Shown: positions 2,201 to 52,051 of the stretch, piece after piece
How the letters are laid out: each line of letters begins with the position of its first letter
Position numbering within the stretch: the first letter of the stretch is position 1
Sequence record: OR513085.1
Strand: one strand, 5' to 3'
DNA length: 64,000 bases
Program-made: the position numbers and the translations under genes
The notes under the pieces: model-generated
Databases searched by the model: none
The model's input: only the letters and a program-made list of their open reading frames with translations
Told to the model about the DNA's origin: nothing

Positions 2201-2321
2201 CGTTTAATTATATTTCAAAATAAAAAATTTTAGGTCCTCAGAATGTCACTAAAGTATACATCTCATGCACCATTTTAAACCTTTGTAAATGTATACATAA
2301 ATTCAACACATTTTTTTAACT

Positions 2322-2666
2322 ATGGCGGATGAAACTCAAATTGTCTGGAATAACTCGTTATCCAGTCTCCCTCCCGAGCATACAAAAGTAAATGTGCGTT
2401 ACAAAGAATGGCTAAACGGCCGTGAGAAAACGTATATACGACTATGTACACTCGAAAAATTCTACAATGACCCAATGTCACATTACTTTAAATGGCTTTG
2501 GTTCTTTGTACCACCATTCCAATCCAACCAAACTTCACTTGAGCTTGTAGGTACGGAATGGTCTGTAATTGACCCTCCAGTAGGCGGCAATCGTATAGTC
2601 TTAACAAATTCCGAAGGCAAAATTTACGTCTTTGGTACAACTAACAACTTAATTTTATTGAAGTAA
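2322..2666 (+). CDS. DUF551-like module protein (paralog of 8185..8526)
   Basis: W..S..LPPE..V.V.Y, WFFxPxF and TEWS shared with 8185; ATACATAAAT late-type element at about 2293. Confidence 0.6.
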   Translation: MADETQIVWNNSLSSLPPEHTKVNVRYKEWLNGREKTYIRLCTLEKFYNDPMSHYFKWLWFFVPPFQSNQTSLELVGTEWSVIDPPVGGNRIVLTNSEGKIYVFGTTNNLILLK

Positions 2667-4231
2667 TGGCAGACATTAAACTAAATCCAAATGATCTTAG
2701 CGGCCGTCCAGTGGCAGACATTAAAAATTCTACTGATGGCGACAAGCAAAAAGTACTTGTAGTCAAAGGCACTGAATTGGAGCAATATGAAGTATCGAAA
2801 ATTATTGATAAAGCTACTGAAGGTACAGAAGCTATTGTAGACGGCAAAATTGCAGAATTTTCTCGTAACTTACCGTTTGCAGAGTCGTTCGACTACTTAG
2901 ACAATGCAAATTTACAGCATGCAAAAAGCATAAATTCATGGCTATCATCTACTGTTAGAGGTGGCGAAGATGACAATGAAAACTGGACTTGGCGTAAAAT
3001 TGAAGAGCCTCGTGAAACGTTAGGTATGTTGCTAAATGTTGCTAGAAATAACGCCGCTACTGCAGAAAAATATAATCAGACGTTATACCGAAATATAATG
3101 TTCGCTGCAAGACCTGGTATGGTTGGTAAAATTTCAATAGACTTAGTTACCGACGACAATGAATTTCAATTCATAGCATTTAAGAAAAATGATACTGGAC
3201 CTTACGAAAATATGGTTTGGCGTTCAGACACTATCAAAACTGGTGCAGGTCTATACACTGCAGATTATAGCAATGTTGGCCTAATAGTAGACAATTCTAC
3301 AATATTTGGAATAATCAACATAGGCTGGGAAAAACCTATAACAATTAAGCAAGATGATAACATTGTAGACGGTGGCGGCTGGTGCTTACGATCAGATGAC
3401 GATTCATATTCAATTAACGGGCTTGGCGTATTTTCAATGACCGTAGAAATTCATGAAATCGAAAAGGACTATGGACCAGTATTTAGGCCAGGCCAATTTG
3501 ATTTAGTGCGTTCAGTTTTTAACATTGTCAACGAACTTACAGTTAACGGAGGTATTGTTACGCATTCTACGAATTACGGTGACGTTAATGGTGACTGGGA
3601 ACCTGTGGTAGTTAGTGGAGTCGACACAGTTCTGCAAAAAATAAAAGAAAAACGTCCAGGTTTTACTGGGCAAGTTAAAATGCTACAAGTTTCAGCTAGG
3701 GCGGCGACTACTAAATCGTTCAATCTTGCAATTTATGCAAAACGATCTGACAGTGATAATTTTAACACAGTTACTATATTTAGGCATTTGCGTGCTGAAA
3801 CTGTAGGTCAATTGTTTACGTTTAAAATAGACGCTAGCTATTTGGACGATTTTGACATTTATGCAGGATTTTATAACTACTTTGACCCAAAAACTGAAAC
3901 TGTAGATATTTTGCAAGATAACTCTAAGTCAGACGTTACGTTGTACAAGTACAATATGGACACTGGCAAAATAATCGGGACATTTACTGGTAAGCCTTTG
4001 CCAATACAAATGAATACTGTAAAAGTATTAGAATCTAGCATAGTGTCTAAGCGAGACTTGGATAGAATTAACAACAGATTTTATGCGGTCGACGACAGCA
4101 TAAACGACATACGTAATTTATTACAGCAAGAAATTTGGGAAATTAACCAACGTCTGCAATCACTAGGATTCGATTATAGCAAGCGACTAATTTATAATCC
4201 TGATGGTACTATGGACTGGGTTGCTAAATAA
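2666..4231 (+). CDS. Probable virion fibre/whisker-like protein
   Basis: 521 aa; N-terminus and C-terminal coiled coil + DGTxxW end resemble 8567..9124; beta-rich middle. Confidence 0.45.
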   Translation: MADIKLNPNDLSGRPVADIKNSTDGDKQKVLVVKGTELEQYEVSKIIDKATEGTEAIVDGKIAEFSRNLPFAESFDYLDNANLQHAKSINSWLSSTVRGGEDDNENWTWRKIEEPRETLGMLLNVARNNAATAEKYNQTLYRNIMFAARPGMVGKISIDLVTDDNEFQFIAFKKNDTGPYENMVWRSDTIKTGAGLYTADYSNVGLIVDNSTIFGIINIGWEKPITIKQDDNIVDGGGWCLRSDDDSYSINGLGVFSMTVEIHEIEKDYGPVFRPGQFDLVRSVFNIVNELTVNGGIVTHSTNYGDVNGDWEPVVVSGVDTVLQKIKEKRPGFTGQVKMLQVSARAATTKSFNLAIYAKRSDSDNFNTVTIFRHLRAETVGQLFTFKIDASYLDDFDIYAGFYNYFDPKTETVDILQDNSKSDVTLYKYNMDTGKIIGTFTGKPLPIQMNTVKVLESSIVSKRDLDRINNRFYAVDDSINDIRNLLQQEIWEINQRLQSLGFDYSKRLIYNPDGTMDWVAK

Positions 4232-4238
4232 CATAAGC

Positions 4239-4270
4239 AAAGCCTGGACGTCATAACGTCCAGGCTTTTT
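4239..4270 (+). terminator. Rho-independent terminator (ACGT-core family)
   Basis: aagcctggacgt-cata-acgtccaggctt + T run. Confidence 0.9.
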
Positions 4271-4307
4271 GCGTCATTGTAGTATTTTAAACAAAACATA
4301 AAATATC

Positions 4308-8566: not shown

Positions 8567-9124
8567 ATGGCTGATGAAACATTAAACAAATTGCCAGTTG
8601 GCCAATTGCCTGCAGCTACGAGTGCTACAGGAATTAACGTAGTAGTTCACAAAGACGGAGTACTTATGCAATCGGCAGTTAACGTTATTACGTCTGCAGT
8701 TAGTACAGAAATTACTACGTTAAAAACTGATGTAGCTACCGCAAAAGCTGATGCTGCACAGGCTAAAATCGACGGTGCTACTGCTAGAGCTGATCTTGAC
8801 GTTTTCAAGCAATCTGAATTTGCTCCAGTTAAAGCAGAATCTGCAGCTACTAAAACTCAAGCAAACACTAACAAAACTGATATTACTGCGCTTAAGACTG
8901 ACAATACTGCAAATAAAACTGATATCGGTACGCTAAAAACTGACGTTGGCACTTTGAAAACTGACAACACTGCAAATAAAGCAGACATTGGTACGCTAAA
9001 AACTGACAATACTAAAAACAAAGCAGATATTGCTAAACTTAACACTACGTTAACAAAGGATGGCAAAATTGTAGTTTTGTCTTTTGAGGCAGATGGTACT
9101 GTTAAGTGGACTGCAGGAACGTAA
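8567..9124 (+). CDS. Coiled-coil fibre/whisker-like protein with heptad repeats
   Basis: Repeats LKTDNTANKTDIGT; C-terminal DGTVKW; N-terminus like 2666. Confidence 0.55.
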   Translation: MADETLNKLPVGQLPAATSATGINVVVHKDGVLMQSAVNVITSAVSTEITTLKTDVATAKADAAQAKIDGATARADLDVFKQSEFAPVKAESAATKTQANTNKTDITALKTDNTANKTDIGTLKTDVGTLKTDNTANKADIGTLKTDNTKNKADIAKLNTTLTKDGKIVVLSFEADGTVKWTAGT

Positions 9125-9153: not shown

Positions 9154-9183
9154 GCCAGGACGTTCTGAACGTCCTGGCTTTTT
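9154..9183 (+). terminator. Rho-independent terminator (ACGT-core family)
   Basis: gccaggacgtt-ctg-aacgtcctggc + T run; preceded by a (gtaacgaac) tandem at 9121-9146. Confidence 0.9.
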
Positions 9184-9212: not shown

Positions 9213-10790
9213 ATGAATAATAACGAAATTAGAGCTGATGTTGAATGGTTCAAATTTCCTAAGTTCCCTCCTGAAAAAGTTAACGTTTACGTAAAGTGGC
9301 AATATCCAAACGATACTGAAATTCATATTGACGTTTGCTATCTTTACCGAGCATATCCAAAAATGACCAAGGATGGCTACAAAAAACTATTTTGGTTCGT
9401 AGACAAAAAGTCAAATCATGAAGCTATTCCTATGGAACACGTTATCGAATGGGCTTATGAAAACGAGGACGACGATGACCCGGAAATTCCTGAAAATGAT
9501 ATGCTTGGTACGATTTATGAATTTGGTCGTAACAACTGGCAACCAGGATTTGATGGCGAATGGATTGGCAAATGGGGTGTCTTTTGGGATTACGATTCTA
9601 CTAACGCGCTGATAGTCAGAGAAATTGTAGAAGATGGCGGCGACTTAATGTACGACATTAACCACAGTTCTGCATTAATTACTTACGACTACACTATTAC
9701 ATTACGTAATTTTGAAAATAGCAGCATAATGCTATGGGGTAACAGATATGTCAAACAATACGATGGTCATACCGAAATACGAACGTTTTTGACATGCAAA
9801 TACATCGCTGATACAGATACATACGAAATACGATGGGCTGATGAGAAATATTCGTTAATAAGTCTAAATGCCGCAGTCGTACAAGTGCCTGCAAGTGAAT
9901 ATTTGCATACTGATGAATGGCAGTTAACTATAGAGTCTAAACGTACTGCATATTATGTTGCTGTTAAGAACTTACGTACTAACAAAACTTACGTTGTATA
10001 GGATGGTCCTAATTATTGGACAAAGCCGCATAGATGCTATTTTATTTTAAAGCAAATAAAATCGCTACCTGCAGAAGAGCGCCCTGCATTAGTAGACGTA
10101 AAATATCATTCAAAACAGGAGACTTTTGTACCATTTTTGATTTACGCAGATATGTCAGCATTCGGTGCTAACGTAGATGGTTCATATGCATTAGGCGGTT
10201 GGGGTTCTTGCTTTAAAGACGCTGTACTATATGGCGGATGCACTGCAACAAACCAAATGATATATGACTATTCTAAAGAAATTGCATTAATTAAACCAGG
10301 TGCATTAATTATAGCAGGCGGTGCATATCCTCATATGCTTATGCCTGGCTGGGAAGGTGATGAAATGATGAGAGCTATGCAATGGTTTAAGACAGATTAT
10401 CCTGATCAGCTAATAACGTTTCTTAAAGTTGCAATATACGGCAAAGTATATCCTAACGCAGCATCGCAGGTTCAATGTACACTAATGTTTCAACCTGAGC
10501 CAGGAACGCCGGAATACGATGTGCTTGAGGATTTTAAGCCGTACAATTATTGCATGGCTCCTGGTACTGAAGACGATCCTACTATACGAACAGCATTCTC
10601 TGAACATGACAATCCTGAAGCTCCGCAAATGTATCAAGGTTTACTTACAGATGTTGGCGTAACATATTTGACAGTAAAGGCAGACGAAAAATGGGGCGAG
10701 ACTAGAAAACGTTTTATACGTAAGTACGTAACTAAGTGGTTGACTGAACGTAACTTGCCATTAGACAAACTTGAAAAATACATAAAATAA
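9213..10790 (+). CDS. DUF551-like + beta-sandwich + SGNH-like protein interrupted by one in-frame TAG (readthrough gene or pseudogene)
   Basis: ORFs 9213..10001 and 10137..10790 share a frame with only TAG 9999-10001 between them; the 525-aa joined product aligns end to end with 10804..12402. Confidence 0.75.
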
Positions 10791-10803: not shown

Positions 10804-12402
10804 ATGAGCAGAGAAATAATTGACATTAAGGATGCAGTTTGGTACACGCTTGAAGAAAAACTGCCGAAAGAAAATTCGACAGTTTTCATTAAGTGGAAAC
10901 ATGCAAAAGATGATGCTGAACTTCATCATTTGTGCAGATACGGCAAAACGTATCAGTCTATGACGCTTAACCGCAAGAATATGTTTTGGAAACTTAGCAC
11001 ACCAGATAATTGGGATGCTTTTGAAACTGATGACGTTTTGCAATGGGCATATGCATACTCGGATGAAGAGGACCCAATTATACCGAACTTAGAGCCTATC
11101 GGCGTACTTTATGATTTTAACAAAGACAATAAGTTTGAAGGTTCCGCCGATTCGTTTTATCATAACGCTCTAATAGTTGATGAAGATGGCTATCTTGTAA
11201 AAGACCCAAACTATAATAGCTGGTTCATTGCAGTTACTTGCAAAAAACATTCAGGCTTATTCGAGTTTAAGTACACTATAGAAGTTAACGACTTAATAAA
11301 CAACGAATTTGAATTGTACAGTACTGGGTATAATCCTAGACGTTTTGGCCACACTGACAATACTATTAGATTTGAAGCTTATCGTATGTGGTCAGGTGCA
11401 GATAAAATATTATTCAGACTAGTAGATAATAGCACTAATACTACGTACAATTCAGATGATGCATTGCAGTCTAGTGATTTTGACGAAGAACGTTTTTACA
11501 GAATTACCGTAGAATCTACTTTCGATTGGTTCAAAGTTTATATCGTTGACACTGAAACTAATGCAAAATATTCGTTGTACGATGGACCTAACAAATTTAC
11601 AGATTCGCATTATTTAAAAGTTAAGTATAACGGTAACGTTGACGTAGATGGTGTTTATAAAATTCGCCAGCTTAAATTTGAATCTAACGCAAATAAGTTT
11701 TTGCCTTTCTTAATGTTTACTGACTATTCAGGTTTTGGCGTAGACGTTAATACAAAAATAAACGTTAAAGAAAATGGTTGGAATAGTTGTTACACATTGT
11801 CAGAGCCGTATGGTGGCGGATATTTGGACATTACTAAGCTAACACATTTAATTGACGAAATTGCTTTACGTAAACCAGGAACTCTAATTTTAGGTGCAGG
11901 TGCGTACAGAGGAGTATTTAAACCAGATGATCCTGTGCTAGTAGAAATGTTTGAAAAGGAAATTGGCCAAGCTCTAGACAAATTAGAAGCTGCGATAGGC
12001 AAAGAAAACATTGCAGTTATCGACGTTGCAGTTTATGAATCAATGTACCCTGATTCAAAATGGGCCAAGGACTATACTAGAAGAGTTTTGCTAGGTGAGC
12101 GTGGTTATGACGACTTAGGTGTAAGTCCTTATGATGAACTTAAAGACCCTAATTCGCCAGTCGACATTATTCAACAAAGATTTAATGGAACTCTGCCATC
12201 TGACGATAACTTACATGTTTGGGGTAAACTTAATGACGTTGGTATTTCGTACTTAAATGCTAAAGTTGAACAAAGCAATGCACTATACAACAACATGCGT
12301 ACTAGATACGTAAATTATGTTAAGCGTTGGTTAACTGAACATGACTTAGACTCTAATGACTATCAAAAGTACTTAGCGCACTACTACAAAAACGCTAGAT
12401 AA
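10804..12402 (+). CDS. DUF551-like + beta-sandwich + degenerate SGNH-like protein (possible virion appendage)
   Basis: VWYTLEEKLPKE..QWAY N-terminus; beta-rich middle; FTDYSGFG, KPGTLILGAGAY, LNDVG resemble SGNH blocks. Confidence 0.5.
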   Translation: MSREIIDIKDAVWYTLEEKLPKENSTVFIKWKHAKDDAELHHLCRYGKTYQSMTLNRKNMFWKLSTPDNWDAFETDDVLQWAYAYSDEEDPIIPNLEPIGVLYDFNKDNKFEGSADSFYHNALIVDEDGYLVKDPNYNSWFIAVTCKKHSGLFEFKYTIEVNDLINNEFELYSTGYNPRRFGHTDNTIRFEAYRMWSGADKILFRLVDNSTNTTYNSDDALQSSDFDEERFYRITVESTFDWFKVYIVDTETNAKYSLYDGPNKFTDSHYLKVKYNGNVDVDGVYKIRQLKFESNANKFLPFLMFTDYSGFGVDVNTKINVKENGWNSCYTLSEPYGGGYLDITKLTHLIDEIALRKPGTLILGAGAYRGVFKPDDPVLVEMFEKEIGQALDKLEAAIGKENIAVIDVAVYESMYPDSKWAKDYTRRVLLGERGYDDLGVSPYDELKDPNSPVDIIQQRFNGTLPSDDNLHVWGKLNDVGISYLNAKVEQSNALYNNMRTRYVNYVKRWLTEHDLDSNDYQKYLAHYYKNAR

Positions 12403-12409
12403 AGCTTTG

Positions 12410-12441
12410 AAGCCAGAACGTTCGTAACGTTCTGGCTTTTT
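12410..12441 (+). terminator. Rho-independent terminator (ACGT-core family)
   Basis: aagccagaacgtt-cgt-aacgttctggctt + T run. Confidence 0.9.
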
Positions 12442-12533: not shown

Positions 12534-14078
12534 ATGGCATTTAACGTAATTACGTTGATGGACGCTAACGTTCTTGTTGAGAAAACGCGAAACATCGACA
12601 TACTTTCAGATAACAAACTTTTCAAATTAAATACAACTCATGGCGAGCAAGTTTGGTCGTCTAATAAAGCAACTAACAACTCAGAAGCTTCAACGTTCAC
12701 AAGAGAGTACATTAGACCTGTTTTAGTTGGCAAAAATTCTGATGGGTTTAGACCTGTAGCGCCTACGGAGATTGTAGCAGACGGAAACGCTCAGCTACTT
12801 TGCAACATACATAACGTTTTTATTTCGTCGTTTGACTTTAAAACGTTGTATTCTAATGCATACTCTGCTACATTGGAAATCTACCAAGTTTACGACGGTA
12901 AGGAAATTATACTAAGCTCAAATGTCTTGGCTTTGATGGACTTCAGGCTTAGTAAATTTGACCTTGAATATGCAAACAGATTCTATTCAACATATTGCCC
13001 AGTTCAGGTAGTAGACTTGACTTCAATGTTACTATCTAAAAATCCTGACCATATTGAGTTAGTTTCACAAATAATCGATGTGCCTAGCAGTCAAATTAAC
13101 GAGGCTTTGCTAAGTAATATCCACTACCGCTTTGCATACATTGACGAATCTACTATAACAGTTCCGCCTACTACAGCGTATTTTGAATTTGACATTACTG
13201 AGATTGTTTCACGTCCAGAAAGCCCTGCATCTTGGGCACTTGAAGGTGACTTAAATGTACTAGTTACTAGGTCAGGTCGTAGAATACAAATTGGCTTAGA
13301 TCAGTCAAATCCTGACTTAATGAACACTCTAACGCAAATTGTCGATAGCGTAGAATTGCTAAGCATAACGTATGACGTAACGTTTACATCGTACAAAAGT
13401 ACAGTAGACCCAAATGATTTTGAATATCAGGGAGTACATTACGAAGAAATTGGCAAATATAGCATTACTTGCGCTAATACATTCGAGCCAGTAGAGCCTG
13501 TTACGTTACTACCAGATATTGCAGATAGCGCGGACTTACTAAGCATTAACGTACTTATGCAAATAACATCATCACGTAATACAATTTCTTTAAGCAAAAC
13601 GTATAACCAATTGTTCCTTGGTACTGACTTATCTGCACTAAAGAACATAGTCTACAACATTCAAGCAGAGCAATTCAGAATCAACAATGTTATCGAAACT
13701 ACTCAGAACGTTGTAACGTTCAACAATACTAGCGGAGTTAACACGATAGCTCAACGTAATAGCTTACAATTTGTAACGCTAAAAGCTGTACATATCAATG
13801 ACTTCGACAGCGGCCAGCTTTCAACTGATGCTACAGAAACTACTCTTTACTTACGAACTACGCCAATGATGTTCGCAGTTAAGTTCATTTCAGATGTAGA
13901 CTTCGACCTACGTAAATACGAGGCTATCGAAATTACGTACAATGCAAGGTCACAAAAACCAACAAAAATTGAAAAAGACGTACTATATTTCCAACTAGGC
14001 TGGCAAGATGCTACCGAAATAGCTGTAGTTATTAACGGTGTTGTAGCAACTGTGCTAGGCGCACAAAAAGCATTCTGA
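12534..14078 (+). CDS. Hypothetical protein, probably structural
   Basis: 514 aa, beta-rich; ATACATAAAC late-type element upstream. Confidence 0.45.
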   Translation: MAFNVITLMDANVLVEKTRNIDILSDNKLFKLNTTHGEQVWSSNKATNNSEASTFTREYIRPVLVGKNSDGFRPVAPTEIVADGNAQLLCNIHNVFISSFDFKTLYSNAYSATLEIYQVYDGKEIILSSNVLALMDFRLSKFDLEYANRFYSTYCPVQVVDLTSMLLSKNPDHIELVSQIIDVPSSQINEALLSNIHYRFAYIDESTITVPPTTAYFEFDITEIVSRPESPASWALEGDLNVLVTRSGRRIQIGLDQSNPDLMNTLTQIVDSVELLSITYDVTFTSYKSTVDPNDFEYQGVHYEEIGKYSITCANTFEPVEPVTLLPDIADSADLLSINVLMQITSSRNTISLSKTYNQLFLGTDLSALKNIVYNIQAEQFRINNVIETTQNVVTFNNTSGVNTIAQRNSLQFVTLKAVHINDFDSGQLSTDATETTLYLRTTPMMFAVKFISDVDFDLRKYEAIEITYNARSQKPTKIEKDVLYFQLGWQDATEIAVVINGVVATVLGAQKAF

Positions 14079-14414: not shown

Positions 14415-15035
14415 ATGAAGCAATTAACTAAAGCAATATTTGACCTAGCGCAACCGATTTATGGAAGGCTTAACAAACGTACATTTGTAAATTTTGAAGT
14501 AGGCGACCTTGTAGATGAATCCAGACAGCAAGGCATGCATGGATATGACATAGACTTTGACGTAATACTTTCAAACGGCAAACCTTTACAACGTGAATAT
14601 GTTTGGACATTAGAACAAAAACAATCTTTGATTTTGTCAATGCTTAAAGGAATTAAGTTGCCGCAATTCCACTTCGCAATATTTAAGGAATCTGACAAAG
14701 CTAAAAATCCTTATGACCGTAGACTATTCAAAGTTATCGACGGCAAACAAAGACTTTCTGCAATTAAGGAATTTGTTGAAAATAAGTATGCTATATTCAT
14801 TGGCAATGAAACGTATTATTTTTCCGATTTTGATAGCGAAATGGAATATAAAATAAGAACTTACACAATTGATTGTAGCGTGTATTATGAACATAAGTAC
14901 GTAAATGAGCCAAAGCATAACACATACTTAACTGACAGAGAATTAGTAGAATGGTTTATTCTAGTTAACTGGGCAGGTGTTCAGCAAGAGGCCGAACATA
15001 TGTTTAATTTACGTGAATCTTTAAAAACAAAATAA
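14415..15035 (+). CDS. DUF262 (ParB-superfamily, GmrS-like) protein
   Basis: LQREYVWTLEQKQSLILSMLKGIKLP and VIDGKQRL. Confidence 0.85.
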   Translation: MKQLTKAIFDLAQPIYGRLNKRTFVNFEVGDLVDESRQQGMHGYDIDFDVILSNGKPLQREYVWTLEQKQSLILSMLKGIKLPQFHFAIFKESDKAKNPYDRRLFKVIDGKQRLSAIKEFVENKYAIFIGNETYYFSDFDSEMEYKIRTYTIDCSVYYEHKYVNEPKHNTYLTDRELVEWFILVNWAGVQQEAEHMFNLRESLKTK

Positions 15036-52017: not shown

Positions 52018-52051
52018 AAAAGCCGGAACGTACAGAACGTTCCGGCTTTTT
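52018..52051 (+). terminator. Rho-independent terminator (ACGT-core family)
   Basis: aaagccggaacgt-acaga-acgttccggcttt + T run. Confidence 0.9.

Follow-up and report, generated by a model that had tools for sequence, protein, structure and literature searches.

In Qbeta, programmed readthrough of the coat gene yields two isoforms, coat and A1, and the stop codon that is read through, a UGA, is conserved and marks the end of a complete domain. Bypassing of the type known from T4 gene 60 occurs in the topoisomerase II family. Among the phages of Bacteroidota, crAss-like and Lak phages are known that use code 15, in which TAG is reassigned to Gln (10.1101/2021.08.26.457843; PMC9523058); such phages have suppressor tRNAs and many in-frame TAGs, which are concentrated in late genes. 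In T4-type phages, hyperplastic regions that are bounded by PeSLs have been described (PMC2839356, PMC4122927).

Here we analyse an interrupted gene of Chryseobacterium phage MA9V-2, a phage of C. indologenes MA9 from medical sewage in China. The window, that is, the whole stretch of DNA that was analysed, comprises bases 1-64000 of record OR513085.1 (218,539 bp in full). According to the isolation paper (PMC13414440), sequencing was done on Illumina NovaSeq PE150, and the genome has 269 ORFs and zero tRNA genes; the paper does not mention the locus at 9213-10790 and reports no separate verification of it. A first-pass annotation of the same DNA had proposed three readings of the in-frame stop, of which a very recent nonsense mutation fits best, with a sense codon at this place in the relatives and both pieces of the gene undecayed. 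The gene is an ORFan present in two tandem copies, and we consider it likely (probability about 0.65) that it is dispensable and that one copy is switched off by a nonsense allele which is both real and recent.

One reading frame with a single amber codon

Translated as a whole, the interrupted gene (Table 1) comprises 526 codons, with a single internal stop, which is an amber codon (TAG), and a terminal TAA. This is the one in-frame amber that the first-pass annotation had described, and the sizes that it gave, 525 amino acids for the joined product and 532 for the paralogue, are correct. Its impression that both halves look intact also holds, as each is collinear with the paralogue MA9V2_016 and has codon statistics like those of intact genes. 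BLASTP places the upstream piece on the first half of MA9V2_016 (26% identity, E 1e-18) and the downstream piece on its second half (29% identity, E 2e-26), and the two alignments neither overlap nor leave a gap between them. There is not a single frameshift, insertion or deletion relative to MA9V2_016. In the homologue alignment that had been proposed as a check, both intact relatives, MA9V2_016 and MA9V1_225 of the sister phage MA9V-1, are collinear with the two pieces and uninterrupted, and the column that aligns with the stop holds a sense codon in each. The chance that the downstream piece would stay open, calculated from base composition, is only ~3e-9, which marks the continuation as real coding sequence. 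MA9V2_014 and MA9V2_015 are therefore better read as one interrupted gene than as two proteins.

Table 1 Positions of the interrupted gene, its surroundings and other features named in the text (window coordinates unless a genome segment, L, is given)
Feature	Position	Strand	Description
Interrupted gene (MA9V2_014 + MA9V2_015)	9213..10790	+	One frame with one internal stop, ~525 codons if read as one; two hypothetical CDSs in GenBank, with MA9V2_016 and MA9V2_017 next
MA9V2_016	10804..12402	+	Intact tandem paralogue, 532 aa, 14 bases after the terminal stop of the interrupted gene
Upstream slot border	9154..9178	+	GC-rich hairpin, 11 pairs, then T-run, terminator-like; conserved in MA9V-1
Downstream slot border	12409..12439	+	GC-rich hairpin, 14 pairs, then T-run; conserved in MA9V-1
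Hairpin motif, copies in the window	9154-9178, 12409-12439, ~4240-4265, ~52020-52046		
Hairpin motif, other copies in MA9V-2	L003 ~24960; L004 ~4142; L005 ~3730, 27703; L006 ~9445		Listed by genome segment
MA9V-2-specific insertion	2247-4282		2 kb
MA9V2_013	8567-9124		Just upstream of the slot
MA9V2_017	12534-14078		Next gene downstream
MA9V2_019 stretch	14417-15023		
MA9V1_228	L002 10906-11467		In MA9V-1
Family B DNA polymerase of MA9V-2	L004 39314-45537 (record 149314-155537)		Split over two genes
RNA genes of MA9V-3	L008 22766-23124 and 38122-38219		

TAG is used as an ordinary stop codon in this genome. The three ORF ends that the first-pass annotation had cited as true TAG stops (2146, 19495 and 24751) are all TAG, and genome-wide the codon closes 35 of 144 long plus-strand ORFs (24%), in line with its view that the code is not globally reassigned. 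A TAG flanked by at least 150 open codons on both sides occurs only twice in the genome, once in the interrupted gene. The second case, at the end of the gene for the DNA polymerase N-terminal part, was rejected as a chance same-frame neighbour: the TAG is followed by a 23-codon intergenic stretch and then by a gene with its own ATG, and the two genes are separate. The family B DNA polymerase itself is split, MA9V2_192 encoding the exonuclease domain together with the beginning of the polymerase domain, and MA9V2_196 the remainder; the 3.4 kb between them hold two unknown ORFs and a TnpB gene (IS605 OrfB/Cas12f-like).

Regulated amber readthrough by a phage suppressor tRNA, the second of the earlier readings, is contradicted by the common use of TAG as a terminator, by the tRNA complement and by the RNA around the stop. 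ARAGORN finds no tRNA gene in the complete 218.5-kb genome, and hence none with the CUA anticodon for which a scan had been suggested, in agreement with the published count (PMC13414440); no Rfam family reaches its gathering threshold in the complete genome. Over 121 nt around and behind the stop, the RNA folds no better than shuffled sequences (z -1.23; 25 of 200 shuffles equal or better). MA9V-3 (PV245944, 103 kb), an unrelated phage isolated on the same host, encodes a tRNA of unusual length (98 nt) and a tmRNA that specifies a tag peptide of its own. The tRNA was considered as a possible suppressor and rejected, as it is a tRNA-Gln(UUG).

An ORFan family in a hairpin-bounded slot

The family to which the interrupted gene belongs has three members, the gene itself, MA9V2_016 and MA9V1_225 (474 amino acids), which share 23-29% pairwise identity. 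Two other genes that were considered as additional paralogues, MA9V2_017 and MA9V2_003, proved unrelated. When either piece of the interrupted gene was compared by tblastn with 50,697 phage records, the only matches were to MA9V-2 itself and to the distant MA9V1_225. A HMMER profile built from the family members in the window returned only the window's own three proteins from 1.84 billion representative proteins, and an exact-sequence look-up places these proteins, as singletons, on record OR513085 only. Pattern scans of IMG/VR and JGI metagenomes gave zero close relatives of the interrupted gene, and no sister phage was found in IMG/VR and metagenomes through the conserved flank gene MA9V2_017. 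Searches of Pfam (also at E up to 10), PHROGs, NCBIfam and PDB sequences assign the proteins to no family. By these searches the family is an ORFan with members in just two phages; as they gave only three distant members, there is no orthologue by which to judge the break, and the usual comparative confirmation is impossible.

The predicted fold provides a lead only. An AlphaFold2 model of MA9V2_016, run on a three-row alignment, is poor (mean pLDDT 42), with values of 69-82 only over residues ~190-260. In this model of mean pLDDT 42, the protein is beta-rich to approximately residue 305, with alternating alpha and beta elements thereafter. A Foldseek search with the beta-sandwich of the same pLDDT-42 model gives galectins, legume lectins and PL7 alginate lyases (E ~2.5e-5, TM ~0.5 on target), a lead towards a concanavalin-A-like sandwich; that the C-terminal part of the family may be SGNH-hydrolase-like is a hunch. 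In the model (mean pLDDT 42), the position aligned to the stop is not in a linker but within the best-predicted segment, in a predicted strand of the sandwich that is followed by further strands. Modelled alone, the downstream piece reaches a pLDDT of 36, unusable for structure search.

The first-pass annotation had called the gene a receptor-binding variant. This label is unsupported, because the neighbouring genes, which encode topoisomerase II subunits, a helicase-like protein of 1215 amino acids and dCMP deaminase, serve DNA metabolism and not the tail; the searches of Pfam, PHROGs, NCBIfam and PDB gave no match that would favour it. The tail genes are ~180 kb away from the two copies, and the capsid and lysozyme genes and very large ORFs are located at 160-205 kb. 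Among the DNA-metabolism genes lies MA9V2_013, which has a PHROG match to a minor head protein (E 1.6e-15) and a weak match, below the family cut-off, to a Pfam phage scaffold family.

The interrupted gene and MA9V2_016 share one unit that is bounded by two hairpins, and the 3.2 kb between these hold exactly the two genes. In MA9V-1, the same two hairpins bracket one very different gene, MA9V1_225. Outside the hairpins the DNA of the two phages is 85-89% identical, whereas between them there is zero similarity. A core sequence is shared by all four border hairpins of the two phages, the downstream core resembling the upstream one. As the same hairpins bracket different content in the two genomes, the interrupted gene is, judged by this comparison, located in a variable accessory slot that also holds an intact member of its family.

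Near-identical GC-rich terminator hairpins, with arms of 12 nt, a loop of 2-3 nt and mostly a T-run behind them, occur at approximately nine places in MA9V-2 (Table 1), as found by a pattern script with an arm-pairing test. One copy forms the 3' edge of an MA9V-2-specific insertion between the genes for the topoisomerase II B and A subunits, which is absent from MA9V-1 and contains MA9V2_002 and MA9V2_003 (521 amino acids, no family match). Elsewhere, the stretch at MA9V2_019 has no DNA similarity to MA9V1_228, in surroundings that are 89% identical. A scan for sigma-70-type promoters found no more sites than in shuffled sequences, and the sigma-70 consensus is unsuited to Bacteroidota.

Age and alternative readings of the break

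Both pieces of the interrupted gene are undecayed. Their codon usage fits as well as that of the intact neighbours (log-likelihoods per codon of -3.85 and -3.84, against -3.80 and -3.86) and far better than do shifted frames. Of the possible substitutions in the downstream piece, ~5.6% would add a stop, and under neutral decay, ignoring indels, a second stop would have arisen with 95% probability by ~0.07 substitutions per site; the flanks of MA9V-1 and MA9V-2 have diverged by 0.11-0.15. The break should therefore be young: it is probably younger than the split between the two phages, and may even date only from the plaque purification of the stock. A downstream piece that is still in use would equally be left undecayed.

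The main rival to a nonsense allele, although an unlikely one, is that the gene is intact in the population and that the stop reflects either an error in consensus calling or an allele, minority or mixed, that became fixed in the assembly. A single base call separates the two states, the remainder of the gene is flawless, and the record is a single Illumina NovaSeq PE150 assembly, with no second assembly found. Substitution errors are, however, rare in deep Illumina consensus sequences, only ~6% of the possible substitutions in the gene create a stop, and nonsense alleles are common in dispensable phage genes and easily fixed by single-plaque purification, all of which argues that the mutation is real rather than an error of the record. 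The two CDSs in GenBank, and two pieces that both look coding, would also suit a functional split gene, with the pieces made separately, the second by internal initiation, and working together or alone. By its sequence, however, the downstream piece has no translation start signal of its own. Its first canonical in-frame starts lie several dozen codons in, within family-conserved sequence, and a product that began there would miss family-conserved segments. The leaders of these starts (20 nt) are 25% A, below those of all 53 real starts in the window, which are A-rich (55 ± 10%), and below the mean at internal ATGs (33%). The annotated second CDS, MA9V2_015, simply begins at the first ATG of the piece, and the break is predicted to fall inside the beta-sandwich, not between domains. 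We regard a functional split as very improbable.

Leaky or regulated readthrough, by near-cognate host tRNAs or a host suppressor, would give a short and a long isoform as in Qbeta. Some readthrough occurs at any stop codon, at a low basal rate, and the downstream piece is fully open, with the codon usage of an intact gene. Like the Qbeta coat gene, the interrupted gene has a long open in-frame extension behind its stop; unlike the Qbeta stop, this one interrupts a predicted domain and is absent from both intact relatives, so that it is not a shared feature of the family, although the test of conservation is weak with paralogues this distant (23-29% identity). The phage encodes no suppressor tRNA, MA9V-3 on the same host offers only tRNA-Gln(UUG) and tmRNA, and no stimulatory RNA structure was found 3' of the stop. 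Because the stop falls inside the predicted domain, the short form would be an incomplete fold. Readthrough of this kind seems quite improbable to us, and so does an amber codon kept as a gate, at which only low near-cognate decoding, or only hosts and co-infections that supply a suppressor, would give the full-length protein; if so, the phage would produce a carbohydrate-binding-like accessory protein in two lengths, short and long, and would need no tRNA of its own for this. Positive evidence was found neither for readthrough nor for a functional split. Bypassing of the T4 gene 60 type and reassignment of TAG, across the phage or in its late genes, are both contradicted and have next to no probability. 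The interrupted gene does adjoin genes for topoisomerase II, in whose family the T4 bypassing is found, but homology to the paralogues continues directly past the stop in the same frame, and nothing is skipped. As with the code 15 phages, an in-frame TAG lies within a gene and the host belongs to Bacteroidota, the phylum in which recoded phages are known (10.1101/2021.08.26.457843; PMC9523058); unlike them, MA9V-2 has one such TAG in one gene and zero tRNAs, and uses TAG as a frequent terminator. MA9V-2 is not a phage to cite for amber recoding.

Consequences and comparison with known systems

On the reading that we favour, the ORFan accessory gene is present in two tandem copies that have diverged strongly, and one of these acquired a stop codon by a single recent point mutation. 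Translation would end at this stop and give at most a truncated product that, by the model, would lack the last predicted strands of the beta-sandwich and the whole alpha/beta C-terminal part, and that we infer to be non-functional; the downstream piece would be transcribed but not translated to a useful extent. The phage would tolerate the loss because the gene is dispensable on the laboratory host or because MA9V2_016 covers its function, in which case the copies would be redundant. The practical value of this finding is small. As MA9V-2 is in development as a biocontrol phage, it is useful to know that the sequenced stock probably has at least one knocked-out accessory gene.

In its features, the break resembles amber alleles or young pseudogenes of non-essential phage accessory genes, in which one in-frame stop is the only defect of the gene. 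As in those, the gene lies in a variable, dispensable region, with an intact paralogue alongside and no recoding machinery. Nothing essential differs, and the sole peculiarity is that the family is an ORFan from two phages; the gene is unusual, the kind of event is not.

The hairpin-bounded variable slot is more interesting than the break itself, and its unrelated-looking ORFan cassettes in sister phages are the part of more general interest. In several respects it is like the PeSL-bounded regions of T4-type phages. Repeated stem-loop terminators, themselves conserved, enclose a slot of ORFan genes whose content is wholly different between two phages that are otherwise 85-89% identical, and the hairpin motif recurs approximately nine times in MA9V-2, once at the edge of another phage-specific insertion. 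On this comparison, which is drawn from sequence, the MA9V-2 hairpins look like the stem-loop half of T4-type PeSL cassettes. The different cassettes that the slot holds in the two sister phages suggest that the cassette shuffling of T4-type coliphages may also operate in large phages of Bacteroidota.
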